Sequence record: MT708547.1
DNA: 64,000 nt
Strand: one strand, 5' to 3'
In this document: in pieces, positions 20,989 through 54,090 of the stretch
Layout of the letters: the number at the start of each line of letters is the position of its first letter
Position numbering within the stretch: position 1 is the stretch's first letter
Made by a program: the position numbers and the translations under genes
Notes under the pieces: model-generated
The model's input: only the letters and a program-made list of their open reading frames with translations
What the model was told of the DNA's origin: nothing
Database searches by the model: none

Positions 20989-21387
20989 ATGGCAAAGAAA
21001 AAGAAAAAGATTGACAGAACATTACGGCATCCTAAGTACAGAGTTCAATATCATGATAGTGAACAGATAGAAGTAGATTTGGGAGGTGGAAGTAGGTTAA
21101 AATATGCTAACAATGCATATGTGAATAATAAATTTGTATTAACATTGTATAAAAATTTCAAGTATCATTCAAGTAATGATCTTCTTGATTATACATTTAT
21201 TAGTACTGAAGAAGAATTATTTCAGCATTCTTTGCTGTGTACTGTTTATATTGATTTTTCTGTACTGGTACAGTTACAGAAAGCTTTAAAGCATCAAATG
21301 TATCAATATATTTTTCCAAATAAACTGGAAATGATTAATATGAAGAATAGATATGTTTTGGATATTACTGGTACTGAAATTGTTTAA
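20989..21387 (+). CDS. FQYST family
   Basis: STEEELFQHSL. Confidence 0.8.
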   Translation: MAKKKKKIDRTLRHPKYRVQYHDSEQIEVDLGGGSRLKYANNAYVNNKFVLTLYKNFKYHSSNDLLDYTFISTEEELFQHSLLCTVYIDFSVLVQLQKALKHQMYQYIFPNKLEMINMKNRYVLDITGTEIV

Positions 21388-21412
21388 TAACAATTATAAC
21401 TAATGAGCCAAA

Positions 21413-21940
21413 ATGAAAATTAATATCAAAGATGATAGTGAATTAAGTACATTAGTACAAGATATATGTACTGTATACAATAAGATGAAATCTGTAACTA
21501 AAGATAAAGGAAGGATAGATGTATTACGCGGTGAATACAGATTTAATCATATATTGAGTAAAAATTTATCTGTACTGCAAACTTGTATTAGTAATGTTCA
21601 ATACAATATCATTGAATACGGTTCTTTCTTTTCTGATTACTGCTATGATAATATGATAAAGATTGATAATACTGGTAATATTTTGGATGTTTATTTAGCA
21701 CCGAATAGTCCAGTATTAGAAATTATTAAAATTGGTGATATTAATAACACGTTGGAACACATTGAATTGCCTCCAAGGTCTACTGAGATGACAGAGGAAT
21801 ATGTATTCCAATTAAGTACAGTACATGAATATTTTTCTGCTATTATAATGATCACAGAGTTAAAGAAAAGAATTAATCGCAAGATGCGTGTTCATGTACC
21901 TGATTTCAGTACTGAATTGATCAAGTACATTGAGCATTGA
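21413..21940 (+). CDS. FQYST family
   Basis: TEEYVFQLSTV. Confidence 0.8.
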   Translation: MKINIKDDSELSTLVQDICTVYNKMKSVTKDKGRIDVLRGEYRFNHILSKNLSVLQTCISNVQYNIIEYGSFFSDYCYDNMIKIDNTGNILDVYLAPNSPVLEIIKIGDINNTLEHIELPPRSTEMTEEYVFQLSTVHEYFSAIIMITELKKRINRKMRVHVPDFSTELIKYIEH

Positions 21941-22026
21941 GATATAAAATGTCTTGACATTGGCTTTTCTTTTTGCTATTATAATCATAAACCCGTATTA
22001 TCCTTTACAAAGAGTAAGAAAATAAA

Positions 22027-22665
22027 ATGACTACAAGTGAATTATCTGAACTGTTTGGGATTTTATCAGTACTGATGCCTAAGATTGAAAGTAATCCACA
22101 TCATTTATTGAGTCCAAAAGCACAATCTATTTTCAGTATTGAAAAGCGAATGGATCTGGAATACGAGGAACTTTGTGCTCGTTTGAAAGCTATTGCAAAT
22201 GATGAGATAATTCCAAAAGAATATCTTGTTAGTATCAATGAATTGAGTTCTTACACTCGTTGTGAAATCACTCGTCCTGAATATTATGATAGTGGTACTT
22301 GTAGTTATAAACGAGTATTAACAATGAAAGAAAATTCACATGATTTTAATGTAATTAATCTTACTGATGATGGTAAAGTGAAAGAAGTTATGTATCATCC
22401 TACATCAGAAGAAATTATGATCAACAAAGGTGGTGTTTGGGGAAGTCGACATAAAATTAAAATTCCTAATTACAAAGACTATGATGATGTTGATGCTTAC
22501 ATGTTTCAGTTAAGTACTGTAAAGAATATTAGTACTGAAGAAGAAAATATTATGAAGTTCTTTATGTTCTTACAGAAGTTTAAAAGTTCACGAAAGCGTT
22601 TGCCTAAATTTAGTACAAACATTAAACTGATTTCATTATCTAAACTGCTAGAGTTATATGACTAA
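22027..22665 (+). CDS. FQYST family
   Basis: DAYMFQLSTV. Confidence 0.8.
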   Translation: MTTSELSELFGILSVLMPKIESNPHHLLSPKAQSIFSIEKRMDLEYEELCARLKAIANDEIIPKEYLVSINELSSYTRCEITRPEYYDSGTCSYKRVLTMKENSHDFNVINLTDDGKVKEVMYHPTSEEIMINKGGVWGSRHKIKIPNYKDYDDVDAYMFQLSTVKNISTEEENIMKFFMFLQKFKSSRKRLPKFSTNIKLISLSKLLELYD

Positions 22666-22942
22666 AATTGAATACTATTCAGTACTGAATATACAGGAAG
22701 TATGCAATGAATTATACTTCACTCCTTATACAGAAGTATTGCGTTCTGTACTACAATCACTACAGAAGGAATTCAATGCAAAGTACAAAGGAACACCAGT
22801 ACGAACAAAAAACAATGAATTTGTCTATGAGACTGTAATTGATCATTATATTATATCGTTCATTGATTGTGTGTTCAAAACTGATATTGACTGGAACAGA
22901 TATTTTGATGAAACTGTTATGATCATTGGGGATAAAAAATGA
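22658..22942 (+). CDS. EY/FNxKY family
   Basis: MTKIEY..LQKEFNAKYKG. Confidence 0.8.
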   Translation: MTKIEYYSVLNIQEVCNELYFTPYTEVLRSVLQSLQKEFNAKYKGTPVRTKNNEFVYETVIDHYIISFIDCVFKTDIDWNRYFDETVMIIGDKK

Positions 22943-23220
22943 CTAAAGATGAATATAAATCTGTTTCTATTATTAGAAAAATGTGTGATTCTTTTTACAG
23001 AAATACAGAATACGGTACTGCTATGCGTTCAGTACTGAAGACGTTATCAAAAGATTTTACTCATAAGTATCATGGCCGAAAGATAAAAATTAATACTATT
23101 AATGCAGAATATTACACAAAAATTAAAAAGTACAAGATTACATTAGGTGAATGTGATTTTCGTACTAACACCGGAATTAATGGTTCATTTTTTGGTGATT
23201 ATGTGACGCTATGTGATTAA
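22939..23220 (+). CDS. EY/FNxKY family
   Basis: MTKDEY..DFTHKYHG. Confidence 0.8.
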   Translation: MTKDEYKSVSIIRKMCDSFYRNTEYGTAMRSVLKTLSKDFTHKYHGRKIKINTINAEYYTKIKKYKITLGECDFRTNTGINGSFFGDYVTLCD

Positions 23221-23290
23221 AAATGTTTTTTTACTTACCATGTTAGTACATAGATAAAACAACCATGATATTTAATATAAAGGAAACGTT

Positions 23291-23515
23291 ATGAAACAAT
23301 TTTTTAAAACCATCTGGAATTCACTGTTCAGTAAAAATGTTAGTACTGTTGATAGTACTATTACTACCAATCCACAAAGTACATACATTCCTGTATATAG
23401 CAATGAAAATCCATTCTATACAGAAGAAGAGAAGAAACAATGGATTGAAGATGAGATTCGTTTACGTAAAGAAGAAGCAGAGCGTATGAAACTTGAAAAA
23501 AGTAATAAGAAATGA
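23291..23515 (+). CDS. Hypothetical protein
   Basis: AAAGGA SD. Confidence 0.75.
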   Translation: MKQFFKTIWNSLFSKNVSTVDSTITTNPQSTYIPVYSNENPFYTEEEKKQWIEDEIRLRKEEAERMKLEKSNKK

Positions 23516-25840: not shown

Positions 25841-26269
25841 ATGAAAACACTAGAAGAATTAATTAGAATAAGTAAAAATATCATTTATATTAACAATGTA
25901 TTCAGTACTGGAAAAGGTCATCTTATTGTTGATGATGTTAGATACTTTTATTCTGAGTCTGCTCATATATGGTACAGTTCATTTTATGTTCGTGATTTTG
26001 AACCCGAGTGGGATTGTATTTCTTATTCGAGGGGTTTAAGTACAGTCACAACTATTTCTTCTATGAAGGAACATACTCACACACTCGATTGTTCAGAATT
26101 TGATTTAAGTGAAGAGATGCTTTTTCAGTACAGTACAATGTATTCCAGTACCGAACTGGAAGCTATATTTGTTAAAGTGTACATAGATAAATTCACAGAT
26201 GTAGATGAATTTTGTATAAATCTATCACAATATCCCGTGTATTGTGAAAAACTTGGATTAATACCATGA
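25841..26269 (+). CDS. FQYST family
   Basis: SEEMLFQYSTMY. Confidence 0.8.
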   Translation: MKTLEELIRISKNIIYINNVFSTGKGHLIVDDVRYFYSESAHIWYSSFYVRDFEPEWDCISYSRGLSTVTTISSMKEHTHTLDCSEFDLSEEMLFQYSTMYSSTELEAIFVKVYIDKFTDVDEFCINLSQYPVYCEKLGLIP

Positions 26270-26682
26270 GTTACCGAAGTTCATTATTTTTTGCACAAAA
26301 GGTATACTGTACCGTTCAGTGCTTTTATAATTCCGAATTTGATAATACCGTACTGAAAAAGACAGGAAATGACAGTATATTTGAGTACTACGATTATCAG
26401 AATTTATTTTTTGATTACCCAGTCTTCAATACTACACAGATGGATTGTCATATTTCTCTGGATTTTTCTTTTATGACATTCAATTCCTATAGTACAGGTT
26501 ACATGTCACTTGATTCTGTTGTTAGATTAAATTCTAGTAAGATAGTACCAATTCATAGTAGTGAGGATTATGATTTCTTTAGTAATTATTATACTGAAAA
26601 TGAATTGTTTGTTTGTACTGTATTTTCGTACCTAATTCTTAACAAATGTAAACCATTCTATCTGGATTTGCGTATAATTTAA
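26266..26682 (+). CDS. Paralog pair member 1 (degenerate FQYST-like)
   Basis: ends CKPFYLDLRII. Confidence 0.8.
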   Translation: MSYRSSLFFAQKVYCTVQCFYNSEFDNTVLKKTGNDSIFEYYDYQNLFFDYPVFNTTQMDCHISLDFSFMTFNSYSTGYMSLDSVVRLNSSKIVPIHSSEDYDFFSNYYTENELFVCTVFSYLILNKCKPFYLDLRII

Positions 26683-26752: not shown

Positions 26753-27148
26753 ATGAAAAATAACGAGTCACTTTTTCTTGCTAAAAAGATATACAACACA
26801 GCACAGCTTTTTTATAATTCAAGCTTTAACTGTACTGGATTTAAGAGAAGTTTTGTGGGAATGGATTATGAATATAAATTTTCTGATTTAATTGTTTTCA
26901 GTACTGAAAATACTTACGGTTCTTTCTTTTCTTTTCAAAAAAATATTATACTTTTTGATAATGAATTTACTGGTATAATTGAATGTGAATACAAAGATGG
27001 AACACGTAATTATCTTTCTGAAACATTGTCTTTACGTCAACAGTACCAGCCTGCATATACAAAGGATAATATGTCAGTGATTACAATTTTTTCGTACTTA
27101 GTGCAGATGAAGTGTCAACCATTTTATATGGATTTACGTATAATTTAG
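26753..27148 (+). CDS. Paralog pair member 2
   Basis: ends CQPFYMDLRII. Confidence 0.8.
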   Translation: MKNNESLFLAKKIYNTAQLFYNSSFNCTGFKRSFVGMDYEYKFSDLIVFSTENTYGSFFSFQKNIILFDNEFTGIIECEYKDGTRNYLSETLSLRQQYQPAYTKDNMSVITIFSYLVQMKCQPFYMDLRII

Positions 27149-27456
27149 GGGATATTCTTTTGTTAAAAATTCATTGTCATAACGGTCTTCTGTTTTGCAG
27201 CACTACAATACATAACGGAAGGTTGATTTACAACAAAAAAGATGATTCCTTTTTTTGTATCCATAAGAATTATGAAAAACCACACAAAATTATTGATTAT
27301 TCTGCATTACAAGAGGATGAACTTTTCCAGATGCATTTAGTATATGATAAAGTACTGAATTTGGATTTTCACACTTTAGTATATATTCAGAACAAAATGC
27401 GAGAATTATCAAAAATTTATACTGCTGATTTTAAGATTATAACACCTGAAATATAA
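27112..27456 (+). CDS. FQYST family (start uncertain)
   Basis: QEDELFQMHLVY. Confidence 0.7.
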   Translation: MSTILYGFTYNLGDILLLKIHCHNGLLFCSTTIHNGRLIYNKKDDSFFCIHKNYEKPHKIIDYSALQEDELFQMHLVYDKVLNLDFHTLVYIQNKMRELSKIYTADFKIITPEI

Positions 27457-27457
27457 G

Positions 27458-27790
27458 ATGAATAAAAATATTAGAACCAATCGTAATATGTGGTGCACTG
27501 TATATAAACTGATTTATTCTACTTTTACCCTTATACGATTAGTTAACAAAAATAATATAAAAATTGATGTTTATTTCCATAACAACGGTAATAAAGAGTA
27601 TTACTTAACAGAGGGTAACATATATGAAATTAATGATTTATCCTCTTTGAGTACTGAAGAATATTTTCAATTACTTACTGTATGGGACTATAAAACTGAT
27701 ATTGATTTTGTTATTTCTGCACATAAACGCATAGAGGAACTTAAAAAGGATGAGTTTTTCAATCGTGTCGATACAGTGATTGAATATTAA
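27458..27790 (+). CDS. FQYST family
   Basis: STEEYFQLLTV. Confidence 0.75.
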   Translation: MNKNIRTNRNMWCTVYKLIYSTFTLIRLVNKNNIKIDVYFHNNGNKEYYLTEGNIYEINDLSSLSTEEYFQLLTVWDYKTDIDFVISAHKRIEELKKDEFFNRVDTVIEY

Positions 27791-27957: not shown

Positions 27958-28422
27958 ATGATTTTTGATACAAGGGAGGGTGCACTTTTTTATGCCAATC
28001 AAATATGCAATTTAGTATTGTATTACAAAAGTAATGAAAATTTATTAGATGAATATAAATGTTTGTATTCTAAAGTAGATGATATAGAAAGAGTTTCTTT
28101 GGAAATCGAAAACGACGACCCATTCCCTGAATCAATTATTGATTTTCAAGAAAAATATATTAATTATATTCCAGGTGAAGAATGTGAAATAATTCTTTCC
28201 GATGTATTTGGTCATAGTATCAAAATCAATCCCAGTGACCAAAATGAAGAATTCAATACCAGTACAGAAGAAGGTTATTTCCAGAAGAGTACTATATACA
28301 ATTCTGATGAATTGTTCTGCATTATTCTTTTTGAAAATATAGTACGTAAAATTCCCTTTCAATTCTATATTGATTTAGAAACAATTAATGACATAATAAA
28401 AGAGAAAAATTATGCGATATAA
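27958..28422 (+). CDS. FQYST family
   Basis: STEEGYFQKSTIY. Confidence 0.8.
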   Translation: MIFDTREGALFYANQICNLVLYYKSNENLLDEYKCLYSKVDDIERVSLEIENDDPFPESIIDFQEKYINYIPGEECEIILSDVFGHSIKINPSDQNEEFNTSTEEGYFQKSTIYNSDELFCIILFENIVRKIPFQFYIDLETINDIIKEKNYAI

Positions 28423-28750
28423 AATATATAAAACCAACCACCTGGTTGTAGCTGAGTACCTTTGTGATAATATGTTAGATATGTTCGAAAATGAACATGA
28501 TTTTGTTTTAAATTTAAGTACTAAAAAATTTAAGTTGAACTATTATGGTTCACATGAATTATCTGAACAATATTCAGTTGAATTGCAAGATTGTACTCAG
28601 ATGCAGGATGATGAATTGTTTCAGTACTCTTTGATTTTTGATTTTAATTTATTAAGTTTAAAGAATATTGTATTACTTCAGAAAGAAATGCTTACCATAC
28701 AAGATGATGATACTCATGATACTAAAGAAATTAATTTTATTGACTTTTGA
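28412..28750 (+). CDS. FQYST family
   Basis: MQDDELFQYSLI. Confidence 0.8.
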   Translation: MRYKIYKTNHLVVAEYLCDNMLDMFENEHDFVLNLSTKKFKLNYYGSHELSEQYSVELQDCTQMQDDELFQYSLIFDFNLLSLKNIVLLQKEMLTIQDDDTHDTKEINFIDF

Positions 28751-28810: not shown

Positions 28811-29185
28811 GTGCAGACAAATCAAGAAATACAAATAAAATTAAAAATTAATAATTATTTTAATAAAGTTGTTAGTGCTTCGTATAATGAAGAAGTTTTG
28901 TACGAAATAAATTATTCCATGAATTGTTCATCCTTTTCATTTCGTGAGTATAATGGTATAACTTTAATTAGATCTTATGTAATTCCAGTGATTGATTATA
29001 CTGAAATGCAAGATGATGAATTGTTCCAGTACTCTTTAATATACGATCTGGAACATGTTATCCCCTTTGACTCTATGGTTGAATTACAGGGTATTATGAA
29101 ATCATGTACACAATTAGACCAATTGCAGGGTGGTATTGAATACACATTTAGTACAATGAATAAGAAGAATTATTATGTACAATGA
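28811..29185 (+). CDS. FQYST family
   Basis: MQDDELFQYSLIY. Confidence 0.8.
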   Translation: MQTNQEIQIKLKINNYFNKVVSASYNEEVLYEINYSMNCSSFSFREYNGITLIRSYVIPVIDYTEMQDDELFQYSLIYDLEHVIPFDSMVELQGIMKSCTQLDQLQGGIEYTFSTMNKKNYYVQ

Positions 29186-43636: not shown

Positions 43637-44174
43637 TACTGAAATGTACTTATTGTACAAAAATATTTTACTTGAATTAAAAAGATTATTGCATACTGAT
43701 AATGTACGCGATAATTATCTACATCAAGATATAAATGGTGAAATTTATTGTATAATTTCTGATGGTAAAATCGCATTATATGCTAATTCCGAAAATATAG
43801 CATTCACTTATGTTTTATTTGCTTATTCGTTTAATTCACCAAATTACGTATCAGAAAAATATAGAGTAGAATATGATTCATATGTATACTTTGATCGTGA
43901 TAATTCAACAAATGAATATATGATTAATCACGAAACAAATAATATCATCCAATTGATTAAAGAAAATGAGTTGAGTTCAGATGAATTAGAAAGTTTATTA
44001 TTCCAACACAATACATTGCATTCAGATGAAGATAAATTTTGTATTTGGATGGATTATTATATCAGAGATTACATTGAAGATAAACATTATTTCTGTGTAA
44101 ACTATAACAAATTAAATGAATTCAGTACTGATATATATGAAAATATTCTATTGGAATTAAAGAAATATGATTGA
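43596..44174 (+). CDS. FQYST family
   Basis: ESLLFQHNTL. Confidence 0.8.
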   Translation: MTLKNLSSTTSTNDTEMYLLYKNILLELKRLLHTDNVRDNYLHQDINGEIYCIISDGKIALYANSENIAFTYVLFAYSFNSPNYVSEKYRVEYDSYVYFDRDNSTNEYMINHETNNIIQLIKENELSSDELESLLFQHNTLHSDEDKFCIWMDYYIRDYIEDKHYFCVNYNKLNEFSTDIYENILLELKKYD

Positions 44175-44778
44175 ATTAAAATTTAAAATACAAGAACTAA
44201 AAGAACTGGTAATTCACTTAAAGAATGTAAATGATAAATTCCATCTCTCAGAAAATTTCATGATTTATATTCCAGGTACCGAATCAACACTCATTCACGA
44301 AATGTCAACAAAAGGGATATATTCCAATATTACATTGAAATCAAGAGATTACAAAACTAATATCTATTACAACACCATCTCTTTAATCAGGAGTTCAGAT
44401 CCCTCTGAAGAACGTATCAGGAAATCTAAAACAGTAGGTTCAATTTATAGTAGTTCATGTAATATATATTCTTTATCCGATAATACCAAAATGCAGATTG
44501 GTATATATGAAAACTATCATAGAAAGTGTGATACCAGTGAAAATGGAACTATTGAATTGCCTGATTATGTAAAAGATTCTGATGAATTTGAAGCATTATT
44601 ATTTCAATACAGTACAGAGAGTGATATTAAGTACAACAGATTATTAAAAATGCGTATCATAAAAGAAATATATGATGTACTTCAATATGAAGAAATATCA
44701 ATAGATGATACATTATTTGATTTGGATTCAAATGATTTGAAAACAATTATACAGGAATTGAAATTAAAATTATGCTAA
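44167..44778 (+). CDS. FQYST family
   Basis: EALLFQYSTE. Confidence 0.85.
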   Translation: MIELKFKIQELKELVIHLKNVNDKFHLSENFMIYIPGTESTLIHEMSTKGIYSNITLKSRDYKTNIYYNTISLIRSSDPSEERIRKSKTVGSIYSSSCNIYSLSDNTKMQIGIYENYHRKCDTSENGTIELPDYVKDSDEFEALLFQYSTESDIKYNRLLKMRIIKEIYDVLQYEEISIDDTLFDLDSNDLKTIIQELKLKLC

Positions 44779-45335
44779 CATTGTCCGAAATTCTGGAATA
44801 CGATAATAAAATTATCAATCTCTTGGGTGATATATCCTTTGAATTCAACAAAAAAGAAGATAAAAACACCAATAAAGCCACTATACTGAAAGTAAATGAT
44901 AGTGAATTAGTTGTATTAGAAAATAATCTTCATTTTTATTCTGTTGTACTTAAAGTGTATAATGGTATGTCAGAAACTCCGTGGTATATGGTGAAAAACA
45001 CAGATGATTATGATACATTTCGTGGTATTAAACCATTCATCAACGAGTATGGTATTTTTTGTACTGCAAATGATTACGATGTATTATATGATGAATACGA
45101 TCAATTCGGTACTGTTCATAACGTATTCACAGAAGAACAATATTCCTGTATAGAAAGTACTGCTTTTCAGTTAAGTACAGAGTTTGATTTACAAGTAGTA
45201 AGAGCATTAGCAATGCAAACCAATTTGTATTACAACAAAAGACACTATCAAATAATGTGTAATACAAAAATCCAGGATCATTTATATAATCCAAAATTAA
45301 TTTTAAATCTAGAAAAATATCTGGAAACACTATGA
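44772..45335 (+). CDS. FQYST family
   Basis: ESTAFQLSTE. Confidence 0.85.
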   Translation: MLTLSEILEYDNKIINLLGDISFEFNKKEDKNTNKATILKVNDSELVVLENNLHFYSVVLKVYNGMSETPWYMVKNTDDYDTFRGIKPFINEYGIFCTANDYDVLYDEYDQFGTVHNVFTEEQYSCIESTAFQLSTEFDLQVVRALAMQTNLYYNKRHYQIMCNTKIQDHLYNPKLILNLEKYLETL

Positions 45336-45823
45336 AAGAAATTATTGAATTAATAGAATTGATGCAGTCAAGTATAAGTTCATGTAAACTTGCAACCGGT
45401 GAACATAATTTGAATGCTGATTTTGATTTAGTAGTCAATAATCAAAAGAAATGTATTCACTTGATTAAAAAATCCAGTACTAAAGCAATCAAACATACAG
45501 CACTCATGATAGCTTCTTCACATCCTGCTAAAAAATATAATTCAAATATTGCTAATATAAGTTCACTGTACAAACCAGAAAGTACATCTTCATATATCAG
45601 TTCAATTAAAAGTGAATTGGATTTTCATAAATGCATGTTGGATTCTTATGAAGAATTAGAATTTCAGTACAGTACGATAATTGCACGAAGTGATATTTTT
45701 ATAATTCAATGCTTGTTATATTCAATTGATTTTAAAGATATTGTGTACATGACAAATGATTTTATGAAATATAATTATATTGAAATACTCAGATCATTAA
45801 AGGACAAATTATGCCAAAATTAG
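45332..45823 (+). CDS. FQYST family
   Basis: EELEFQYSTI. Confidence 0.85.
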   Translation: MKEIIELIELMQSSISSCKLATGEHNLNADFDLVVNNQKKCIHLIKKSSTKAIKHTALMIASSHPAKKYNSNIANISSLYKPESTSSYISSIKSELDFHKCMLDSYEELEFQYSTIIARSDIFIIQCLLYSIDFKDIVYMTNDFMKYNYIEILRSLKDKLCQN

Positions 45824-46404
45824 ATGCACAGTACTGTGATAAATTACTGAATGCATTGATTACTATACAGAAGAATATAAAAAAAGAAAAGAGTATTCAA
45901 ATTTACTATAATGACAGTTATATTCTTGTACAATGTAATCCAGATGGTAATTACGTAGAGTTCAGTTTTAAGAAAGAAGATGTTCATGATTGCATTAGTA
46001 TTGATTTACATGAAGCAACACCACATCAAAGTTTAAAAAATATTATTAAAGCATATAAAAGAACTACTTATGCATTTGACACTTTAGTTCACAGATATAA
46101 AACATTTTATTGTATGTTTGATACAGACGAATATGATTTCAATTTAGTAGGATTTGATGAAAATAACATCATTAACATTCCTTATGATTTTGATGATGAA
46201 TTATATTTTCAGTACAGTACTTTATATAGTTTACCACCACAGAGTGATCTTGAGCTTCACAAAAGTATTCATAAAAAATGCAAAAATGAACTACCAAATA
46301 AAAGTGTAGTTAGAATTTCATATCTATCCATCGAATTAGATCAAAACGAAATGGATGAAATTTTGGAATCTTTGTATTCATTGGTTCCTGTGTTTAAGCA
46401 TTAA
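45811..46404 (+). CDS. FQYST family
   Basis: DELYFQYSTLY. Confidence 0.85.
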   Translation: MPKLDAQYCDKLLNALITIQKNIKKEKSIQIYYNDSYILVQCNPDGNYVEFSFKKEDVHDCISIDLHEATPHQSLKNIIKAYKRTTYAFDTLVHRYKTFYCMFDTDEYDFNLVGFDENNIINIPYDFDDELYFQYSTLYSLPPQSDLELHKSIHKKCKNELPNKSVVRISYLSIELDQNEMDEILESLYSLVPVFKH

Positions 46405-46407
46405 AAT

Positions 46408-46441
46408 CCCCCTTGACTGGGGTTTTTTTATTTGTTATAAT
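46408..46441 (+). promoter_or_regulatory. Terminator whose loop is a -35 box
   Basis: CCCC-TTGACT-GGGG-TTTTTTT; TTGACT-17-TATAAT. Confidence 0.75.
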
Positions 46442-46460
46442 AAAAAATAGAGAATATAAA

Positions 46461-47087
46461 ATGAAAAAAGAATCATATAACATACTTCGTGTATGTGAAA
46501 ATTTAATATTATTACTACTGTCTTATAAGAAAAATATAAATTTAAGCAAGAAAATTCTTGATTATCATATTAATATTAATATTACATGTAGTACTCATAT
46601 TTCAATATATTTAAATATTAGTAATTTTGGTTCTATTACAACAACATCATCCAATATAATTTCATTTAATGCTGATAATATTCAACCAGTTGAATTAAAT
46701 TTACCAATTGAAGATATTAAAGGTGAAATGATTTATTTTGATGACCGATATTGTGAATATGATGTTAATAGTCCAAATTTAGTAGGAGCGTATTTAAAAA
46801 AATATGATCCTGATATTGATGGATACAATGAAACAAATTGCCATGAAGTAATGGAAAAGACGTATGATGAATGGGCTTTTCAGTACAGTACATTATATGA
46901 TTTTGTTCCAGATAAAGAAGATTATTTTTACTTGAAAAATTTCATGCATAAATTGGGTAACGAATTCGATTATACATATTCAAATATTTTATTTGAATCA
47001 AAAGTGGATATTGTGAATCTAAAATCTGCAATTGATATATGTACCGAAACTGTTAAAAGGAAGATTGATGAAAACTCCGATATTTGA
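46461..47087 (+). CDS. FQYST family
   Basis: DEWAFQYSTLY. Confidence 0.85.
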   Translation: MKKESYNILRVCENLILLLLSYKKNINLSKKILDYHININITCSTHISIYLNISNFGSITTTSSNIISFNADNIQPVELNLPIEDIKGEMIYFDDRYCEYDVNSPNLVGAYLKKYDPDIDGYNETNCHEVMEKTYDEWAFQYSTLYDFVPDKEDYFYLKNFMHKLGNEFDYTYSNILFESKVDIVNLKSAIDICTETVKRKIDENSDI

Positions 47088-47583
47088 AAAATCAAAGAAA
47101 TATGCACAACGTATATCTGATTGTATTGAACTTATACAATTAATGAGAAAAACTTTTTACGTAAATCACAAAGGTTCTTTTCGATATCAACATGAAAATA
47201 ATGGACTTATTACCATGAGCAGAGGCAAATCACCCTTTGGTGAGGTTATATTAACATATGTACCAGATAATATTCATATTCCGTTCAATGATAATTATCT
47301 AATAGAAATATCAAATTATATTCCAGTACTAGATTATACAGAAGAAACCGAATTTCAATATAGTACTTTGTATAATAATGAAGAATTGTTAATGCATTAT
47401 ATATATTCCATTCTATGGAATTTGAACATCAAAGGTAAAATTTATATAAACCCAAAAATAAATTTAAGAACATATACAATGGCATTGAAAAATATCAATA
47501 ATTATTTTGAGATCACAAATTATAATTTATATAAAGAATTGTGTAATAAAAAATTCAAATCAATGGAAATAAACCACTTATGA
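47068..47583 (+). CDS. FQYST family
   Basis: TEETEFQYSTLY. Confidence 0.85.
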   Translation: MKTPIFEKSKKYAQRISDCIELIQLMRKTFYVNHKGSFRYQHENNGLITMSRGKSPFGEVILTYVPDNIHIPFNDNYLIEISNYIPVLDYTEETEFQYSTLYNNEELLMHYIYSILWNLNIKGKIYINPKINLRTYTMALKNINNYFEITNYNLYKELCNKKFKSMEINHL

Positions 47584-48164
47584 TTGAAAGATATGAGTTT
47601 AGTACAAGAATATTAAATGAAGCACTCAAAAAAGTTCCATCAATTGTAGAAAAACATAGTAAATTATATTCTAAGTACAATAGTAATAGTACATTCAATG
47701 TTGGTATTAAAAATCAGAATTATGAAACTAACATTGATGATAGTTCCATTGAATATGGTTCAGCAAATGGTTCTTCATGGACAATTGAATTTGACAATTC
47801 ACTCCATGATTATTATAACTGGACACCAGAATATAATGAATTTAGCTTTAATACATCATCTGTTGCTTTTTTGGTTAGTAGTGAACATATGTTGTACGCT
47901 CTTTATGATTTTAATACTGAAATTTTTATAATCGAAGACACCGATTTATCTTTTGAAGTAAATTGCATAGATTCGCTACGTGAAATGATTTTTACATTAC
48001 AACTGGAGTACTCAGATATTATTGAGACTGAATTACTATGGAGTATGCTATCACCGATGATTGAGTTTAAAAAGCTGTTGACACCTGACAAAGATGTTGC
48101 TATTATATTTGAACCATATAGACAAGAGTTTTTAGAATTAAACCCAGAGATACCAAACGTATGA
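47580..48164 (+). CDS. Hypothetical protein (degenerate FQYST-like)
   Basis: REMIFTLQLEY at equivalent position. Confidence 0.8.
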   Translation: MIERYEFSTRILNEALKKVPSIVEKHSKLYSKYNSNSTFNVGIKNQNYETNIDDSSIEYGSANGSSWTIEFDNSLHDYYNWTPEYNEFSFNTSSVAFLVSSEHMLYALYDFNTEIFIIEDTDLSFEVNCIDSLREMIFTLQLEYSDIIETELLWSMLSPMIEFKKLLTPDKDVAIIFEPYRQEFLELNPEIPNV

Positions 48165-48571
48165 TTCTATATCACTGTAGTACTGTAAAAATTGACAGCT
48201 TTTATATCCCCTTTGGTGGCTTACATTTTGGTGGTATTAATAGTGCTTTAGAAGCGGCGTTACGTAAGCTGAGAAGCCCACGAAACACGTTGGATCACAA
48301 GGAGATACATATCCATAAATGTTTCGTGGAACTCGGTAAAACACAGCACAGTGAGGATTTGGGTGGTGAGGATTCGTGGAGAGCGGTGATCGATGAATGC
48401 TCACGATTAGGATTTAATTCAGTACAATATAAGAATGTATACGAACCTGATTCAGTACCTAGCTATATGATTTGGGACGCCAGTAGAGTAAAAATCATAG
48501 AAGTGGATTGTATTCATATGGATGACGCCGAACAAATGCTGGAAGAATTTTATGATTCACATTGTACTTAA
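48161..48571 (+). CDS. Putative ADP-ribosyltransferase-fold protein (ART-PolyVal-like)
   Basis: LYHCS..F..GLHFG..A ... GFNSVQYKNVYE..SYMIWD pattern. Confidence 0.5.
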   Translation: MILYHCSTVKIDSFYIPFGGLHFGGINSALEAALRKLRSPRNTLDHKEIHIHKCFVELGKTQHSEDLGGEDSWRAVIDECSRLGFNSVQYKNVYEPDSVPSYMIWDASRVKIIEVDCIHMDDAEQMLEEFYDSHCT

Positions 48572-48591
48572 ACTAATACAGGTAACGATTC

Positions 48592-49143
48592 ATGTCAGAA
48601 CCAATAGAATATTTTAAAGCATGTTCTCGTTTGGTTAATTCAATTTCAAAGGATTTTTTATCAAGAAAACCAAAAGAGTATATTGATGATGTACTTGGAT
48701 ATAATTTTATATTATATTGTGGTTTTAGTTCATTAAGAATTTCAGTTGATGATGAAAACGAAACACCAGTACTTACAATTTTTAATGTTGATTACATAAC
48801 ATGCAACCCAAAAGTATTTCATAAACCACGCTGGTGTATAACTAATATTGTTAACAGTGGTATTCAATGTGGTTTGGTGAAAAAAATTACCCACCGTTTT
48901 GATTCAGACGCTGAACTCATAGATTATGAGAATGATTTTAGTTCTAAGTTATTCTCTAATACTTTAACTGAAGAAGAATTTTTCCAGTACAGTACAGTAC
49001 TGAAATTAAACACATTGGAATATTATCTGGAATGGAATAAAACTATAATGCAAGACGATACAAATGAAAAAGTTGTTTGGCATTGGTATTATGGTGATTT
49101 CATTTCAAAAGAAGCTATTGATGAATTATCGAAAAGAATATAA
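48592..49143 (+). CDS. FQYST family
   Basis: TEEEFFQYSTVL. Confidence 0.85.
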   Translation: MSEPIEYFKACSRLVNSISKDFLSRKPKEYIDDVLGYNFILYCGFSSLRISVDDENETPVLTIFNVDYITCNPKVFHKPRWCITNIVNSGIQCGLVKKITHRFDSDAELIDYENDFSSKLFSNTLTEEEFFQYSTVLKLNTLEYYLEWNKTIMQDDTNEKVVWHWYYGDFISKEAIDELSKRI

Positions 49144-49156
49144 TAAGGATTAAAAA

Positions 49157-49645
49157 ATGATGCTTGACATTATCGGAAATTTAGATATAGTTAATCAAAT
49201 CATTCAATCAGCAATTGATGATATTAAGAAGAAGGAGATTGAGGTACGATGGAATTTCTTATCGTCTGATATTGGATACCTTGTTGATATTAGTGAACCA
49301 ACAAAGAAACAAATGGTTGTACAAATCAATGCACTAAGTAACAGACAATCTCTCTGTAAATTTTATATTACAAAGAATGGGATAATTCTCAGATATAATA
49401 ATAAATTGTTGTTTGAATACAAAAACAGTACTAAAACATTCATTACAAATTTATTTGATGAACCATTTTATATTGATGATTTAGAAAGTACTTTCTTTAC
49501 TCAAAGATGTTTAAATTCGTTTGGTTCACTGGATAATATAGTATTTGATTATGATATCATGACTGAAACATTAAAGAAAACACAGGATTTATATTATGCC
49601 TACTTGGTGTTTACCCAAAAACGAGAAAATGCTAACACAGCCTGA
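49157..49645 (+). CDS. Hypothetical protein (degenerate FQYST-like)
   Basis: DLESTFFTQ. Confidence 0.75.
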   Translation: MMLDIIGNLDIVNQIIQSAIDDIKKKEIEVRWNFLSSDIGYLVDISEPTKKQMVVQINALSNRQSLCKFYITKNGIILRYNNKLLFEYKNSTKTFITNLFDEPFYIDDLESTFFTQRCLNSFGSLDNIVFDYDIMTETLKKTQDLYYAYLVFTQKRENANTA

Positions 49646-50075
49646 CGATAGCGTATATAAGTGTATTGAGCATTTCGATTATTTTATTAATTCAAACAAA
49701 GAATTTATTGTGGTCGATTGTATACCATTGTATTTCATTAAATCCGATTCAAATACAATCAAAGAATTTAATATGTACTATGGTAGTGAATTTATATCAA
49801 TTAAATTAATCAATAAATATTTGAAAAATTCTTATTCAATTGAAAGTTATTACAATGGAATATTTTTGCTCGGTATTAGCAATGAGTACATCAATTCAGT
49901 ACTATTAAAATCAAACACAAATGAACCAGTTTATGCTGATCGAGAAGCATTCAATGAAATCGATTTCTTCCAGTATACATGTGGTGATGCTTATATACCA
50001 TTACACACCAATACGATGTGTTTAGTTAAAGATAAATTGTTGGAGATTGAAAATGATTTCAAAAAATACTATTAA
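49629..50075 (+). CDS. FQYST family
   Basis: EIDFFQYT. Confidence 0.75.
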   Translation: MLTQPDDSVYKCIEHFDYFINSNKEFIVVDCIPLYFIKSDSNTIKEFNMYYGSEFISIKLINKYLKNSYSIESYYNGIFLLGISNEYINSVLLKSNTNEPVYADREAFNEIDFFQYTCGDAYIPLHTNTMCLVKDKLLEIENDFKKYY

Positions 50076-50544
50076 AACTGGAATGCAATGTTTGATTGAT
50101 TATTTTGAAAATCCAAAATCATACACTGAGGTACTGAAAGGTGATCACACATTTCATTACTACGGTGATGATATTCAGATTATAGTTGGATTTCATACAT
50201 TAAAACTTTGTATTATTGATAATAAAAATTCAAATTGTTTTATTTTCTCTCCAGTAAAAATGCGAGAAGATGATATTTGCACCGAATTCGGTACTATTGT
50301 TGCTGTAATTGATGATGATGGTAGAAAAACACATATATACGATACACTATTCATTGAAAGTTCTACTTTGTTTCAATTGAGTTTAATTCACGATATTAAT
50401 ATTGATGGATTGGATATATTGATGTATAAGTATAGTGAATTACTTGAATTACTAGGGAAATCTAAAATTAATCACAATACTAAATACATTAAAGAAGCAT
50501 GTGATAATTTATCAAAAGCTCACGTGCAATACTCTAACGAATAA
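50047..50544 (+). CDS. FQYST family
   Basis: ESSTLFQLSLI. Confidence 0.8.
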   Translation: MKMISKNTIKTGMQCLIDYFENPKSYTEVLKGDHTFHYYGDDIQIIVGFHTLKLCIIDNKNSNCFIFSPVKMREDDICTEFGTIVAVIDDDGRKTHIYDTLFIESSTLFQLSLIHDINIDGLDILMYKYSELLELLGKSKINHNTKYIKEACDNLSKAHVQYSNE

Positions 50545-50585
50545 GACACTTCAGGAAGAAGTGCATTTTTTGGAAAGGATGCCCC

Positions 50586-51062
50586 ATGGAAAAGACCAGC
50601 ATCATCGAAAATGGTGATATTAACGATATTTTATCTTTGAATGGATTTAAAATTCATGATATAATGTTTTCAGTGAGAGACATAATTCAGTGCTTATTTT
50701 TATGTAGTAAAACAATGTACGATTATTATCATAGTGATTTATGTAATATGTTTGTCATTACTATCAGTACTGAAAACTCTTTTGTATTATCTTTTCCAAT
50801 GAATACCAATGAAGAATTCATTCAAGCAGTACTAAGAAATGATAATGTAACTAATGCACAAACTGAAGTTCATAGAAAGAAGAATACTTATACAATTAAA
50901 GATGATAAAATCATTATGTTTGTTAGTAAAGGTTTTATCATGGATAACTTCATTGTTAAAGAATCTTATCATGATTTTAAAATTGAACCTGATAGTTCTA
51001 AAGTTATGATTTATGCTAGTGATATTGAATCAATTACAGTATCTGATCCTGAACTGGAGTAA
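50586..51062 (+). CDS. Hypothetical protein
   Basis: AAAGGA SD. Confidence 0.8.
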   Translation: MEKTSIIENGDINDILSLNGFKIHDIMFSVRDIIQCLFLCSKTMYDYYHSDLCNMFVITISTENSFVLSFPMNTNEEFIQAVLRNDNVTNAQTEVHRKKNTYTIKDDKIIMFVSKGFIMDNFIVKESYHDFKIEPDSSKVMIYASDIESITVSDPELE

Positions 51063-51066
51063 TATT

Positions 51067-51207
51067 ATGTCAAAGAAAAATAAAATAAACAACTACGTTG
51101 CAAAGTACTGCAATGAGTTCAATAAAGCTCAAACTCACGTAGATCGTAAAAAAGAATTCAAAAAGGGTAAAATCAAACACAAAGGCGGGAGTGAATACTT
51201 CCGCTAA
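51067..51207 (+). CDS. Small basic protein (NxVAK..FNKAxxHxDRKK type)
   Basis: GGAG SD; motif recalled from T4-like phages. Confidence 0.7.
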   Translation: MSKKNKINNYVAKYCNEFNKAQTHVDRKKEFKKGKIKHKGGSEYFR

Positions 51208-51241
51208 TTTTTCGCCTAAATTTCGAGAAGAATAACATAAT

Positions 51242-52135
51242 ATGAAAGACTTTTTAAATTTCTCTGTACTATCTGTAAAAGAGCACTTTGATATAATTAA
51301 AGGAAGCTCTTTAAGCAATCCACCATTTAATTCAATTCATAAAAAAACTTATAGAAATGCAATAATTTATGAACTAATGGACTATGATATTTGTTTTTAT
51401 AAACACGACGGTGATAGTACTGAATTTAGTATTCAGGATCATTCATTTAATCTACCGTGTTATTCATTAGTTGAATCAAGAAATTATAGTTCTTATTGTT
51501 CACATGATTATTCGTACAGAAAAGATTTATACACAAATGAATTGTCTTATAAACAATTCACATTAAATGGTATTGATTATGCAAAAAACACATTTAATGC
51601 AAGTGTAAGATATCATAGTATTTCTGATAAAATCAAATACAACCGAATTCTTACTGATTATAATTACTGCATTCGTTCATTATATAGTGATATCAATAAT
51701 ATAAGTGCAACTGCAATTGAATCAGAATTCTTCAACAGAAATTTTCAAATTTTAGAAAAATCTAAAATTAGTACTGGATTTGTATTCGAATCTAATTTTG
51801 ATATTAGTGTACCAAAAGAAAATAATAATAAATTATTAACAAGTGTTCACGTTAATCTAAAGAAAGAAACAAAAGATAGTAACACATTATTTGAAATGAA
51901 ATGGAATTATGATGATAGATTGGTATTTGAATTAGATACACCAGATGCAAGTATTATGCATTTATATAATACACTATACACATTTCAATCTGAATTGTTG
52001 TTTGGTAAAACCGATTATTATCATTTTAAAAATTCATTAATTTATCTGGAAAAAATATTAGAGTATTATAAATCAGAATTACCCATAATCAGTATTGTGT
52101 TAGAAAATATTAAGAGGAACAAAGATGGAAACTAA
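51242..52135 (+). CDS. Hypothetical protein (possible FQ-like tail)
   Basis: 297 aa ORF; LYTFQSELL. Confidence 0.8.
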   Translation: MKDFLNFSVLSVKEHFDIIKGSSLSNPPFNSIHKKTYRNAIIYELMDYDICFYKHDGDSTEFSIQDHSFNLPCYSLVESRNYSSYCSHDYSYRKDLYTNELSYKQFTLNGIDYAKNTFNASVRYHSISDKIKYNRILTDYNYCIRSLYSDINNISATAIESEFFNRNFQILEKSKISTGFVFESNFDISVPKENNNKLLTSVHVNLKKETKDSNTLFEMKWNYDDRLVFELDTPDASIMHLYNTLYTFQSELLFGKTDYYHFKNSLIYLEKILEYYKSELPIISIVLENIKRNKDGN

Positions 52136-52433
52136 TTTTAAAATTGTATTCAAGGAATTTTTAATTCCATACCTTGGAAAGAGATTCATTCCTTATAATG
52201 CAAAGAAAGTACAACACCCAGATGGTACTGAACTGTATTTGGTTGAAAGTACAGAACAAGATGCACTTGATTTATTCCTAATGCATATCAAGAATGCAAA
52301 TTCAGACGTTTATAACAAATATTTTGAGTACTTGTATAATGAATATATTCTTGAATTCCAGGATGAAAATATGTTCAGATTAGCAATGAGTGATTATTCT
52401 GAATGGTCAAATATCGTAATTGGAACAAACTAA
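52125..52433 (+). CDS. Hypothetical protein
   Basis: GAGG SD. Confidence 0.8.
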   Translation: METNFKIVFKEFLIPYLGKRFIPYNAKKVQHPDGTELYLVESTEQDALDLFLMHIKNANSDVYNKYFEYLYNEYILEFQDENMFRLAMSDYSEWSNIVIGTN

Positions 52434-52456
52434 ACTAAACAAGAAGGATTAAAATT

Positions 52457-52843
52457 ATGCGTGATGAAAAGACAAGTAAAATTCTAAAAGCAATCGGTGG
52501 TGTTCTTATTATTGATGTAAAAGGAGAACCAAAACTTTGTGCTATGGAAGATCTAAAAAAATCAAAATTCTTTGATATTGGATCACTCTTCAATGCTATC
52601 CGAGTGCTGAATAATAAAGAAGTTGAAGATTATGGTCTTAAATGGCCTACATACCGTGATGCTTCAGGTGAAATCAGCAATTCATGGAAAACAATTCAGG
52701 AAGTACACAGTCGTTCTGATAATGATTGGGACTTTATCGTTGCTGTCTGTGAACAACTAAATGAAGAAGTACCTGAAGTACTGGAGAAATATATTGTATT
52801 ACAAAATCTGGATAGTTTTCGTAATGGAACTTTGCAGTACTAA
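52457..52843 (+). CDS. Hypothetical protein
   Basis: AAGGA SD. Confidence 0.85.
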   Translation: MRDEKTSKILKAIGGVLIIDVKGEPKLCAMEDLKKSKFFDIGSLFNAIRVLNNKEVEDYGLKWPTYRDASGEISNSWKTIQEVHSRSDNDWDFIVAVCEQLNEEVPEVLEKYIVLQNLDSFRNGTLQY

Positions 52844-52872
52844 TTAACAAAAAAACATAAAGGAATATAATA

Positions 52873-53160
52873 ATGAAAGAACAAGATATGGATATGGAAT
52901 ACGATTTTATTAAAATTGAAGAAGGTGAAGAGAGTGAACAAGTAAGTACACAACTTGTTGCTAATACAAAACGTTCAATGATTGCCCGCAAACCAACCAG
53001 AACGCAGGAGGAATATGAATCGTTTATTGAATCAAAATACACAGAAGTCCATTATATGCAAGATGGTACACCATATGACGTCACCGTTACAGTACTGAAA
53101 CCTGAAGTTAATGATCTTGAAGGTTTAAAACAGTGCTACGCATACCAAACACGTAGTTAA
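52873..53160 (+). CDS. Acidic hypothetical protein
   Basis: AAGGA SD. Confidence 0.8.
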   Translation: MKEQDMDMEYDFIKIEEGEESEQVSTQLVANTKRSMIARKPTRTQEEYESFIESKYTEVHYMQDGTPYDVTVTVLKPEVNDLEGLKQCYAYQTRS

Positions 53161-53169
53161 TATATTAAA

Positions 53170-53198
53170 GGCAGAGATGTACTTCTCTGCCAATTTTT
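53170..53198 (+). terminator. Terminator
   Basis: GGCAGAGA-TGTACT-TCTCTGCC then T-rich. Confidence 0.7.
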
Positions 53199-53229
53199 AA
53201 TTTAAAACAAAATAAGGTTTAGTAGATAT

Positions 53230-54090
53230 ATGAAATTATATTTTTTATTTTCTTTTGCTGAAGATATGTATGGATTTGCAGAAGTTGCAGAAAGTGATGG
53301 AATCTCATCACATACCAGGCATCAAAAACACCCACATGAGTTTTATAATAATTTATTCATGTTTATGCAATATAAAATTTTCTCATCTGAATTTGATAAT
53401 TTAGATCACCCATGGGAATTACCTTTAATTGATATTCCAGACGAATACGTATTTCAGTTCATGTTAATGGGTCTGGAAGACTATGACTTAGTTGTTTATA
53501 ACTACAGAACTAAACGCATTATGCTTGGAACTCACGATAGTTCCATTGTATATGTTTCAAGTACTAATGATGAGTTAGCGTCTGATGAAGGTAATTATAG
53601 AAAATCTTATGGTTATATAGAAAATGATAATGATTTTATTTTAGATTTTCGTGTATCAGAAGAAGAAAGAAGAAAAAGAGAAACTTATCAAGTGGAGTTA
53701 AAACCAGATAATGGTTATAATGAAATTTTAGAAGTACTTAAACCATACTACCTTGATATTGTTTATAAGAAATATAAACGCCTGCTAAATCATCTTAGCG
53801 AAAAAGAACCAATTGGTTTTGAAACCAATTCATTACGTAATAGCATCATATTTCCACCTAGAGTAATGAAATATGGTGAAGTTTCTAAACACAAGATGAA
53901 ACTATATCCAGATGATATTGAAGTTCTATATCATTCGTGGTTGAATAATGATGAACTATATGTAGAAAATAAAAAGTTAATGCGTATAAGTAATAATGAT
54001 GATAGATTGCTACAAGCGTGGTATAATGATTCATATTCTGCATTTACTGACAGTAATTCTGAGTATTGGAAGAATACAGGACAAAACTAA
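53230..54090 (+). CDS. Hypothetical protein with internal FQ-like motif
   Basis: IPDEYVFQFML. Confidence 0.8.
   Translation: MKLYFLFSFAEDMYGFAEVAESDGISSHTRHQKHPHEFYNNLFMFMQYKIFSSEFDNLDHPWELPLIDIPDEYVFQFMLMGLEDYDLVVYNYRTKRIMLGTHDSSIVYVSSTNDELASDEGNYRKSYGYIENDNDFILDFRVSEEERRKRETYQVELKPDNGYNEILEVLKPYYLDIVYKKYKRLLNHLSEKEPIGFETNSLRNSIIFPPRVMKYGEVSKHKMKLYPDDIEVLYHSWLNNDELYVENKKLMRISNNDDRLLQAWYNDSYSAFTDSNSEYWKNTGQN

Follow-up and report, generated by a model that had tools for sequence, protein, structure and literature searches.

What are the dozens of small genes that follow the terminal repeat of Klebsiella phage Muenster, and what could a jumbo phage be doing with them? The stretch analyzed here, which we call the window, is 64,000 nucleotides long and corresponds to bases 1-64000 of the Muenster genome (MT708547.1; 346,937 bp; identity 100%), the left genome end of a phage in the genus Alcyoneusvirus, which comprises RaK2-like jumbo myoviruses. 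At the inner end of the annotated terminal repeat (bases 1-20030), the guanine-cytosine (GC) content drops from ~0.35-0.38 to ~0.27-0.29 (window 19500-20100), and from there to beyond 54 kb nearly all genes are small, lie on the plus strand and are annotated 'hypothetical protein'. Adjoining the terminal repeat is an array of genes whose products carry a Phe-Gln-x-Ser motif, and we refer to them as the FQxS family. We find that this is one lineage-specific multigene family with 30-36 copies in the window, and that each member is predicted to be a single compact alpha/beta domain. Taken alone, this description of family and fold is one that we regard as close to certain. What the copies do can be answered more tentatively: the reading we favor, at a little short of an even chance, is that they form a library of acidic, soluble proteins that are probably made early, stay inside the cell and bind targets in the service of host take-over or counter-defense.

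The motif is far more frequent than composition would predict. Among the 58 plus-strand open reading frames (ORFs) of at least 100 residues between 20 and 54 kb, FQxS occurs 31 times against 1.1 expected from 500 residue shuffles (maximum 5 in 500), and the longer form [DE][DE]xxFQxS occurs 26 times against 0.03. The regular expression FQ[YLF]S matches 27 plus-strand ORFs, each with the motif 38-76 residues from the C-terminus, and an iterative hidden Markov model of the C-terminal regions, seeded with 24 regular-expression matches, converges at 31 ORFs. A full-length profile of 122 family sequences, comprising 32 clear window members and 90 relatives from outside the window, matches 35 window ORFs with E below 1e-3 and a thirty-sixth with E 0.0036; four of these matches were never in a training alignment (26266-26682, 26753-27148, 27160-27456 and 27458-27790). 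Because most window members were inside the 122-sequence alignment, we built a second, foreign-only profile from the 90 non-window sequences as a non-circular check, and it regains 30 window ORFs at E<0.01. The member count is therefore 30 on a strict view and 36 on an inclusive one.

An earlier reading made from the letters of the window, hereafter the sequence-only reading, had proposed a family of about 36 paralogues, and this is borne out at the inclusive end; one profile joins the window members and also finds relatives outside the window. Members lie on the plus strand throughout, are 98-212 residues long and span 20938-50544. The family is thus present where that reading placed it, at 20989-54090, but the first member starts at 20938, the last ends at 50544, and the family profile detects no member among the ORFs of 50586-54090. 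Likewise, the block at 36532-50544 that had been described as a near-continuous tandem array is nearly gap-free, but only 23 of its 28 annotated coding sequences are members, the other five being 37293-37487, 47580-48164, 48161-48571, 49157-49645 and 49596-50075.

Across the 122 aligned sequences, the F and Q of the motif are invariant, the S is kept in 98%, and the two acidic residues before FQ are Glu in 80% and 85%. The amphipathic helix that the sequence-only reading placed after the motif is confirmed, as is an F-Y-x-D-L strand (F 64%, Y 65%, D 38%, L 46%), and conservation is indeed strongest in the C-terminal third. In four divergent window copies the motif is degenerate. Synonymous variants occur at the motif codons (TTT/TTC, CAG/CAA, and AGT, AGC or TCN for Ser); conservation therefore acts on the protein, and an artefact of repeated DNA is ruled out. 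Mean column identity is 8% across the family, and hydrophobic core positions are kept along the whole protein, in an N-terminal helix, several strands, a long helix and the F-Y strand. Library matches cover nearly the full length of the profile.

Structure prediction gives the same picture. With the 122-sequence alignment, AlphaFold2 models the product of 39790-40281 at a predicted local distance difference test score (pLDDT) of 93.6 and a predicted template modeling score (pTM) of 0.88. The model comprises helices at residues 2-20 and 24-30, seven strands between 33 and 97, and a C-terminal part in which a helix at 105-111 bearing EExxFQ leads into a turn of S-T-hydrophobic-Y, followed by a helix at 117-132, a strand at 137-140 and a helix at 144-154; the motif region, a helix and a tight turn, has pLDDT >90. 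An earlier AlphaFold run on 38253-38786, made with 32 paralogues only, reached a pLDDT of 65.8 and gave the same order of helices and strands, and a search of the PDB with that lower-scoring model returned no match. Across the family, the turn after FQ reads S-(T/L)-hydrophobic-Y. Full-length profile matches, core conservation and the AlphaFold model together point to one compact alpha/beta domain per member, not a docking module joined to a foreign domain.

This bears directly on the architecture that the sequence-only reading had proposed, in which hypervariable N-terminal domains are attached to a constant C-terminal docking domain. The separate docking domain is not supported, the prediction being a single rigid domain with a high pTM. 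The hypervariable N-terminal region stands in part: orthologues shared by Muenster and a metagenomic relative agree at 41% of positions in the N part against 58% in the C part, but the profile matches and core positions run through the full length, and the N parts are not unrelated domains. An all-against-all BLASTP search with the N parts of the window paralogues gave no pair at E<0.01, a null result that had seemed favorable to unrelated N-terminal domains and that the full-length profile matches and the structure model overturn. The N-terminal two thirds evolve faster, and this part of the protein plausibly sets specificity. Members are also predicted to be soluble and mostly acidic, with no 19-residue hydrophobic window above 1.4 in any of them and a median isoelectric point (pI) of 4.95, against 6.07 for the other ORFs of the window.

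The members of the window and the ORFs embedded among them are listed below. E is the E-value with the full-length 122-sequence profile, 'foreign' that with the foreign-only profile, and 'no foreign' marks the absence of a match to the latter; L019 is a metagenomic contig, for whose orthologues identities are given.

20938-21387, +: member, 149 residues, first copy, basic outlier (pI 9.3); E 1.4e-7, foreign 8.4e-4
21413-21940, +: member, 175 residues; E 3.6e-14, foreign 1.3e-10; phrog_18780
22027-22665, +: member, 212 residues; E 3.8e-12, no foreign; full-length relative P0042 at 50% identity
25805-26269, +: member, 154 residues; E 1.7e-24, foreign 1.4e-22; phrog_12674 at 7e-48
26266-26682, +: divergent member, 138 residues, degenerate motif; E 1.4e-5 over the full length, foreign 6.4e-7
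26753-27148, +: divergent member, 131 residues, FQ signature lost; E 2.7e-4, foreign 1.9e-5
27160-27456, +: short divergent member, 98 residues, FQ present, without the Ser; E 1.3e-4, foreign 4.3e-4
27458-27790, +: borderline member, 110 residues, FQ present; E 0.0036, no foreign
27958-28422, +: member, 154 residues; E 1.9e-21, foreign 4e-18
28412-28750, +: short member, 112 residues; E 2.3e-6, foreign 4.3e-3; nearest paralogue is the neighbor at 28811
28811-29185, +: short member, 124 residues; E 4.1e-9, foreign 1.4e-6
32280-32615, +: short member, 111 residues; E 5.6e-8, foreign 3.5e-6
32617-33150, +: member, 177 residues; E 3.1e-6, no foreign; best paralogue at 21413
36532-36927, +: member, 131 residues, opens the dense array; E 8.3e-21, foreign 5.4e-18; L019 orthologue, same order
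36920-37309, +: member, 129 residues; E 1.3e-22, foreign 7.1e-21; L019 orthologue
37465-37887, +: member, 140 residues; E 1.3e-17, foreign 1.2e-16; L019 orthologue, 55%
37874-38269, +: member, 131 residues; E 2.8e-18, foreign 1.7e-16; L019 orthologue, 45%
38253-38786, +: member, 177 residues, first AlphaFold target (model pLDDT 65.8); E 2.9e-24; L019 orthologue, 50%
38798-39319, +: member, 173 residues; E 7.2e-18, foreign 7.7e-13; L019 orthologue, 47%
39309-39800, +: member, 163 residues; E 1e-26, foreign 3.3e-26; orthologues in L019 and L002
39790-40281, +: member, 163 residues, reference structure model (AlphaFold pLDDT 93.6, pTM 0.88); E 7.2e-28
40253-40843, +: member, 196 residues; E 1.2e-16, foreign 6.5e-13; L019 orthologue, 36%
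40843-41340, +: member, 165 residues; E 3.2e-26, foreign 1.2e-23; L019 orthologue, 42%
41327-41908, +: member, 193 residues; E 1.3e-10, foreign 2e-8; L019 orthologue, 35%
41912-42520, +: member, 202 residues, extra C-terminal tail; E 1.2e-23, foreign 1.3e-22; L019 orthologue, 55%
42517-43080, +: member, 187 residues; E 8e-13, foreign 9.5e-9; L019 orthologue, 51%
43052-43636, +: member, 194 residues; E 2.5e-12, foreign 4.6e-9; L019 orthologue, 52%
43644-44174, +: member, 176 residues, motif Ser replaced by Asn; E 8.3e-12, no foreign; L019 orthologue, 39%
44167-44778, +: member, 203 residues; E 9e-6, C-terminal profile E 3.7e-12, no foreign
44772-45335, +: member, 187 residues; E 3.6e-10, foreign 3.2e-5
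45332-45823, +: member, 163 residues; E 3.1e-12, foreign 7.9e-8
45811-46404, +: member, 197 residues, last before the sole sizeable gap; E 1.1e-11, foreign 1.4e-6
46461-47087, +: member, 208 residues; E 4.8e-12, foreign 1.2e-6
47068-47583, +: member, 171 residues, basic outlier (pI 8.7); E 1.5e-19, foreign 8.6e-18; relative P0094 at 58% identity
48592-49143, +: member, 183 residues; E 1.4e-9, foreign 1.2e-6
50053-50544, +: member, 163 residues, last window copy; E 7.8e-5, C-terminal profile E 1.1e-7, no foreign
47580-48164, +: embedded ORF, 194 residues, no detectable membership; E ~0.6 when scanned among eight ORFs, not at E<5 window-wide; phrog_29489, no function assigned
48161-48571, +: embedded non-member, putative ADP-ribosyltransferase by the depositor's HHpred note; phrog_11632, no function assigned
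49157-49645 and 49596-50075, +: two overlapping embedded ORFs, no detectable membership; E 1.1 and 8 among eight ORFs, neither at E<5 window-wide

The ADP-ribosyltransferase label of 48161-48571 was not reproduced, with no Pfam match and no sequence match in the PDB; if the annotation is right, a host-modifying enzyme is embedded in the array. In ORF 49596-50075, F-F-Q-Y stands as far from the C-terminus as a member's motif would, and this ORF may be a degenerate copy, as may 47580-48164, 49157-49645 and 50586-51062, all of them family-like in size and negative with the profile.

How widely is the family distributed? Among 1.84 billion representative proteins, 115 clusters match at E<1e-3, and 24 of them are the window's own orthologues. 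Genomic searches used a degenerate DNA pattern for the motif and covered IMG/VR, bacterial genomes and metagenomes. In IMG/VR the pattern finds RaK2, 121Q and one further genome; members are held by 12 of the 74 metagenomic loci matched (all 12 low in GC, and 10 with at least two copies side by side) and by none of the 22 matches in bacterial genomes. Away from phage-like contigs, most pattern matches were thus fortuitous. Metagenomic contigs range from 2 to 23 copies, the largest set lying on a 76.6-kb contig and divided over two loci. When two metagenomic members were compared with isolated phages by tblastn, they returned only Alcyoneusvirus copies at ~32% identity, or nothing. The unannotated Alcyoneusvirus genome OU509535.1, scanned in pieces, holds 42 members, all on one strand and amounting to roughly 6% of the genome; 32 lie in the region equivalent to the window and the rest mostly in the opposite arm leading to the terminal repeat. 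An isolated mid-genome member sits at position 220468 of OU509535.1, which is ~189.5 kb in Muenster coordinates. The right end of Muenster holds at least four further members (MT708547.1 ~304.6, 305.7, 323.4 and 345.5 kb; L017), and 35 members lie within 41 kb in ECO103 4-12-1, a 121Q-type coliphage with a matching segment ~97% identical to 121Q. Same-strand tandem arrays of the family are confirmed in RaK2-like jumbo phages, namely in Muenster, RaK2, OU509535.1, a 121Q-type phage and metagenomic contigs. A second tandem paralogue set also lies outside the window, at MT708547.1 340782-343544 (L017 43783-46545), where eight consecutive small genes are annotated as membrane proteins with 2-3 transmembrane segments; genes for a lipoprotein and a ClpP-like protease follow directly downstream.

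The copies have diverged deeply within the genome. In Muenster, the best BLASTP scores between paralogues are at most 41 bits, and for 26 of 32 copies a foreign relative outscores every in-genome paralogue, in many cases with 35-58% full-length identity. For 12 of the 32, the closest paralogue is the gene next door, which we take as the footprint of tandem duplication. Contig L019 holds 17 members, of which 15 are orthologues of 36532 through 43644 in Muenster order at 35-55% identity, and L002 holds five orthologues, again in Muenster order. Against RaK2, dN/dS is 0.00-0.40 in 22 of the 24 array members compared, the other two being too similar for an estimate, and in nine Alcyoneusvirus genomes the array is covered 100% with its reading frames intact. 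Between genera, in the comparison of a 121Q-type phage with Muenster, one-to-one orthology is mostly lost. Tandem duplication built the array long ago; it is kept copy by copy at short range and remodeled at long range. A fast-turning accordion array is ruled out by purifying selection on each copy and by the conserved order in a distant relative.

Published virion proteomes bear on where the products act, within the limited depth of those for RaK2 and phAPEC6. In the RaK2 paper, all virion proteins, detected or predicted, fall in ORF038-139 and ORF527-533, and the array is ORF412-439; none of the 62 proteins in the phAPEC6 virion proteome falls between gp348 and gp548, and the phAPEC6 array lies around gp424c-427c. 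Members probably act inside the infected cell and not in the virus particle, and loading into the virion, which the sequence-only reading had thought worth checking, is unlikely given that neither proteome has entries from the array region. As to expression, member genes overlap stop to start or abut in a few long same-strand units, and there is therefore no room for internal signals except in a 56-base gap at 46404-46461. The candidate signals are as follows.

35927-35954, +: candidate sigma-70-like promoter upstream of the dense array; TTGACA, 16-base spacer, TATAGT, with TG; 11/12
46403-46441, +: terminator-like hairpin (46403-46426; 8 pairs, then a T run) overlapping a sigma-70-like promoter match (46413-46441; 11/12 consensus matches, extended -10 TG), in the sole gap of >20 bases in the array
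50547-50563: terminator-like hairpin after the last member

Sigma-70-like promoter matches show no enrichment over shuffles in the AT-rich DNA of the window, and the matches are therefore only candidates. The CBB paper proposes that the equivalent arm, by the terminal repeat, is an early host-take-over region, and a literature search found no transcriptome for these genera. The terminal repeat at 1-20030 is annotated in the record with a YeeU-like antitoxin, a putative protein kinase and a DNA-binding protein, and at the megablast level RaK2 and K64-1 share no more than about half of the repeat. Beyond the array, GC-rich hairpins at 53170-53191 and 54094-54117, terminator-like on both strands, stand on either side of the gene at 53230-54090, whose product is annotated as secreted.

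A separate observation concerns the nucleotides that encode the motif. Synonymous codon choice there departs sharply from that in the remainder of the same genes (each p<=1.3e-4): CAG is used for Gln at 22/32 motif positions against 27/115 elsewhere, TAC for Tyr at 14/17 against 95/394, and AGT for Ser at 21/31 against 126/391. Independent arrays from other phage lineages (L116, L019) show the same trend. The window contains 10 occurrences of the 11-mer CAGTACAGTAC, for which 0.01 would be expected; one of them, at 19758-19768, is not within a member and immediately precedes a terminator at 19772-19799. Selection for accurate decoding at invariant residues could produce such a bias, as could a nucleotide-level signal.

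How, then, might the family work? Ancient tandem duplication produced about 40 copies, each of them under purifying selection. In the binder reading that we tentatively favor, the copies would be expressed early by host RNA polymerase and remain in the cytoplasm, where the fast-diverging N-terminal helix and sheet surface peculiar to each copy would bind a different host or rival-element protein. Jointly, they would act as an inhibitor or decoy library for host take-over and counter-defense, and the invariant Glu-Glu/Phe-Gln/Ser cluster would either be a keystone pinning the C-terminal helices to the sheet or serve as a shared contact or active patch. Several points weigh against this account. 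Its early timing rests on position and on weak promoter matches that are no more frequent than in shuffled DNA. Purifying selection and short-range conservation of gene order are atypical of an arms-race library, and no copy has a dN/dS >1. An invariant cluster of E, E, Q and S in a family with a mean column identity of 8% suggests a shared chemical or binding function, and a keystone role leaves such a polar cluster unexplained. Finally, virion proteomes of limited depth could miss packaged proteins of low copy number.

The invariant cluster is also where the main rival begins. If the EE/FQ/S patch docked all copies onto one machine, such as a ClpP-like protease or RNA polymerase, and the variable face of each copy brought a different client, then the array would be a library of adaptors, as the sequence-only reading proposed. 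We consider this doubtful, although it would account for the invariance of one small polar and aromatic cluster on a protein whose remaining surface diverges, and for an N part that diverges faster than the C part even among orthologues; Muenster does encode a ClpP-like protease (record 344207-344839), and 40-odd copies in fixed order would suit a set with one hub. The motif lies, however, inside a confidently predicted compact domain rather than in a separable module or flexible tail, and neither Pfam nor a Foldseek search of the PDB finds similarity to known adaptor or degron-recognition families. To a hub-and-spoke form of counter-defense we assign a small probability: here, about 40 paralogues with a fold unseen in solved structures would dock by the Glu-Glu/Phe-Gln/Ser patch onto one host or phage machine, and their variable sheet faces would capture different host defense or housekeeping proteins. 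The non-random motif codons could then add a nucleotide-level layer, for example a recombination or regulatory signal, and, if this were true, the defenses of many hosts would be met with one conserved mechanism. Alternatively, Glu-Glu, Gln and Ser might form a common catalytic or ligand site in a set of small enzymes, with the variable part selecting the substrate. Polar residues are seldom invariant in a family this divergent, and the putative ADP-ribosyltransferase, by annotation only, sits within the array, but we think enzymes unlikely: Pfam, PDB sequence and Foldseek searches link the family to no enzyme by profile or fold, a cofactor motif is not recognizable in so small a domain, and several clear members lack part of the cluster (26753-27148 is without FQ, 43644-44174 has Asn for Ser, and some are without the acidic pair).

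Three explanations remain, namely packaged proteins, junk DNA and a cleavage-site motif, and all of them are markedly less likely than those above. Internal head proteins of phiKZ and T4 form paralogous families and are typically acidic, and 121Q and phAPEC6 show an inner body; the array could conceivably encode an inner-body or ejected family like the inner-body paralogues of phiKZ-like phages. This is very unlikely, as RaK2 virion proteins map to two other gene clusters, the phAPEC6 virion proteome is empty across the array region, and the genes lie in an early-type arm and not among head genes. Still less probable is filler DNA, produced by tandem duplication and tolerated by a large capsid. 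Such a view is implied by Hua et al. 2017 (PMC5646251), where the 121Q array is used to argue that genomes grow through tandem duplication. These genes are no filler, however, because every copy with measurable dS is under purifying selection and because order is kept between distant relatives at 35-55% identity; frames are intact in all nine Alcyoneusvirus genomes, and the motif is invariant across 122 sequences. The last alternative, that the motif is a shared processing site rather than an element of fold or binding, was suggested by a likeness to the recognition site of the potyviral NIa (TEV) protease. It is equally remote: the motif forms a helix and tight turn of a rigid domain predicted at pLDDT >90, the residues after it keep the hydrophobic pattern of the same domain, and no NIa-class protease was seen in the annotation examined.

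Whichever account of function holds, ~6-7% of the genes in a therapeutically relevant group of jumbo phages, with hosts among Klebsiella, E. coli, Salmonella, Cronobacter, Yersinia, Serratia and Erwinia, belong to one uncharacterized family. A confidently predicted fold without a solved analogue, together with an invariant motif, makes the family a clear target for structural biology and interaction mapping. Should the copies prove to be binders aimed at the host, they would constitute a large untapped set of small inhibitors of enterobacterial proteins, and the family would help to explain the purpose of the 'dark' half of jumbo-phage genomes.

Comparison with known families leaves the FQxS family without a named counterpart, as the sequence-only reading had anticipated. 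In Pfam, the 122 members give matches at E>0.003 only, and no two members hit the same family; NCBIfam and PADLOC give zero matches, and a PDB sequence search gives no relative. In a Foldseek search of the PDB with the pLDDT-93.6 model, the best E is 0.62 and all template modeling (TM) scores are <=0.19. The model is reminiscent of p32/gC1qBP (MAM33) in being acidic and in having an N-terminal helix, a seven-stranded antiparallel sheet and C-terminal helices, and the Leishmania p32 homologue 1yqf ranks second in the PDB, but at E 0.74, probability 0.04, TM 0.15 and a root-mean-square deviation of 17 A, with no Pfam match; we treat the likeness as a chance resemblance. A helix-grip fold of the SRPBCC or Bet v 1-like type was likewise rejected, with three structures found only at E 4.7-8.9 and TM <=0.18. 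Acidic DNA-mimic anti-restriction proteins (Ocr, ArdA) have no Pfam or PDB match to the family, for which a median pI of 4.95 is only moderately acidic. Nor do the members resemble polymorphic-toxin immunity proteins (SUKH, Imm) in Pfam or in PDB folds, and the array has no annotated toxin domain; immunity families also form tandem arrays, and a functional analogy is possible.

Relatives that do appear are uncharacterized. Matches in BFVD are to proteins of RaK2, Muenster, 121Q, SP27, GAP32, Yersinia phages fHe-Yen9-03 and fHe-Yen9-04, Serratia phage BF and Erwinia phage pEa_SNUABM_47, and a protein homology search adds a few further candidates, all named 'hypothetical protein'. In PHROGs, where window members reach best E-values of 5e-50 to 7e-96, the family is split, without annotation, over at least 18 clusters of unknown function (including phrog_12674, phrog_9317, phrog_22855, phrog_13866 and phrog_18780), whereas here a common profile, motif and predicted fold unite these clusters. 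The RaK2 paper reports that ~10% of RaK2 proteins are paralogues and does not define the family. The 121Q array of >30 genes receives one sentence in Hua et al. (mBio), which gives no family name, motif, fold, distribution or function. That array is very probably the FQxS family, because ECO103 4-12-1 has 35 profile matches in 41 kb and a 121Q protein is among the structural matches; the 121Q-type copies are mostly very dissimilar, with many pairs below BLASTP detection. Beyond this one-sentence mention of 2017 the family is undescribed, and at least 18 PHROG clusters are merged here into one superfamily.

Among jumbo phages, a parallel is offered by Bacillus phage G, which has ~35 zinc-ribbon copies (Iyer et al. 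2021, PMC7824862); the FQxS family is absent from that comparative review, in which RaK2 appears only as a citation. The phage G zinc ribbons are alike in that one small domain has been amplified to dozens of copies in one jumbo-phage lineage, and unlike in that the domain is unrelated. Further afield, the ankyrin/PRANC proteins of poxviruses and the multigene families of asfarviruses comprise dozens of diverged paralogues in same-strand arrays by terminal repeats, and are non-structural and presumed to be host-directed; in sequence and fold they are unrelated to the FQxS family. The sequence-only reading had likened the array to poxvirus F-box/ankyrin expansions; with no Ank, F-box or PRANC domain in the Pfam scan and one alpha/beta domain predicted, this likeness is an analogy only. 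What the FQxS family shares with these viruses is the layout of an array near terminal repeats, and what sets it apart from the poxvirus PRANC type is a bacterial host and a single domain per copy in place of a repeat scaffold with a docking box.

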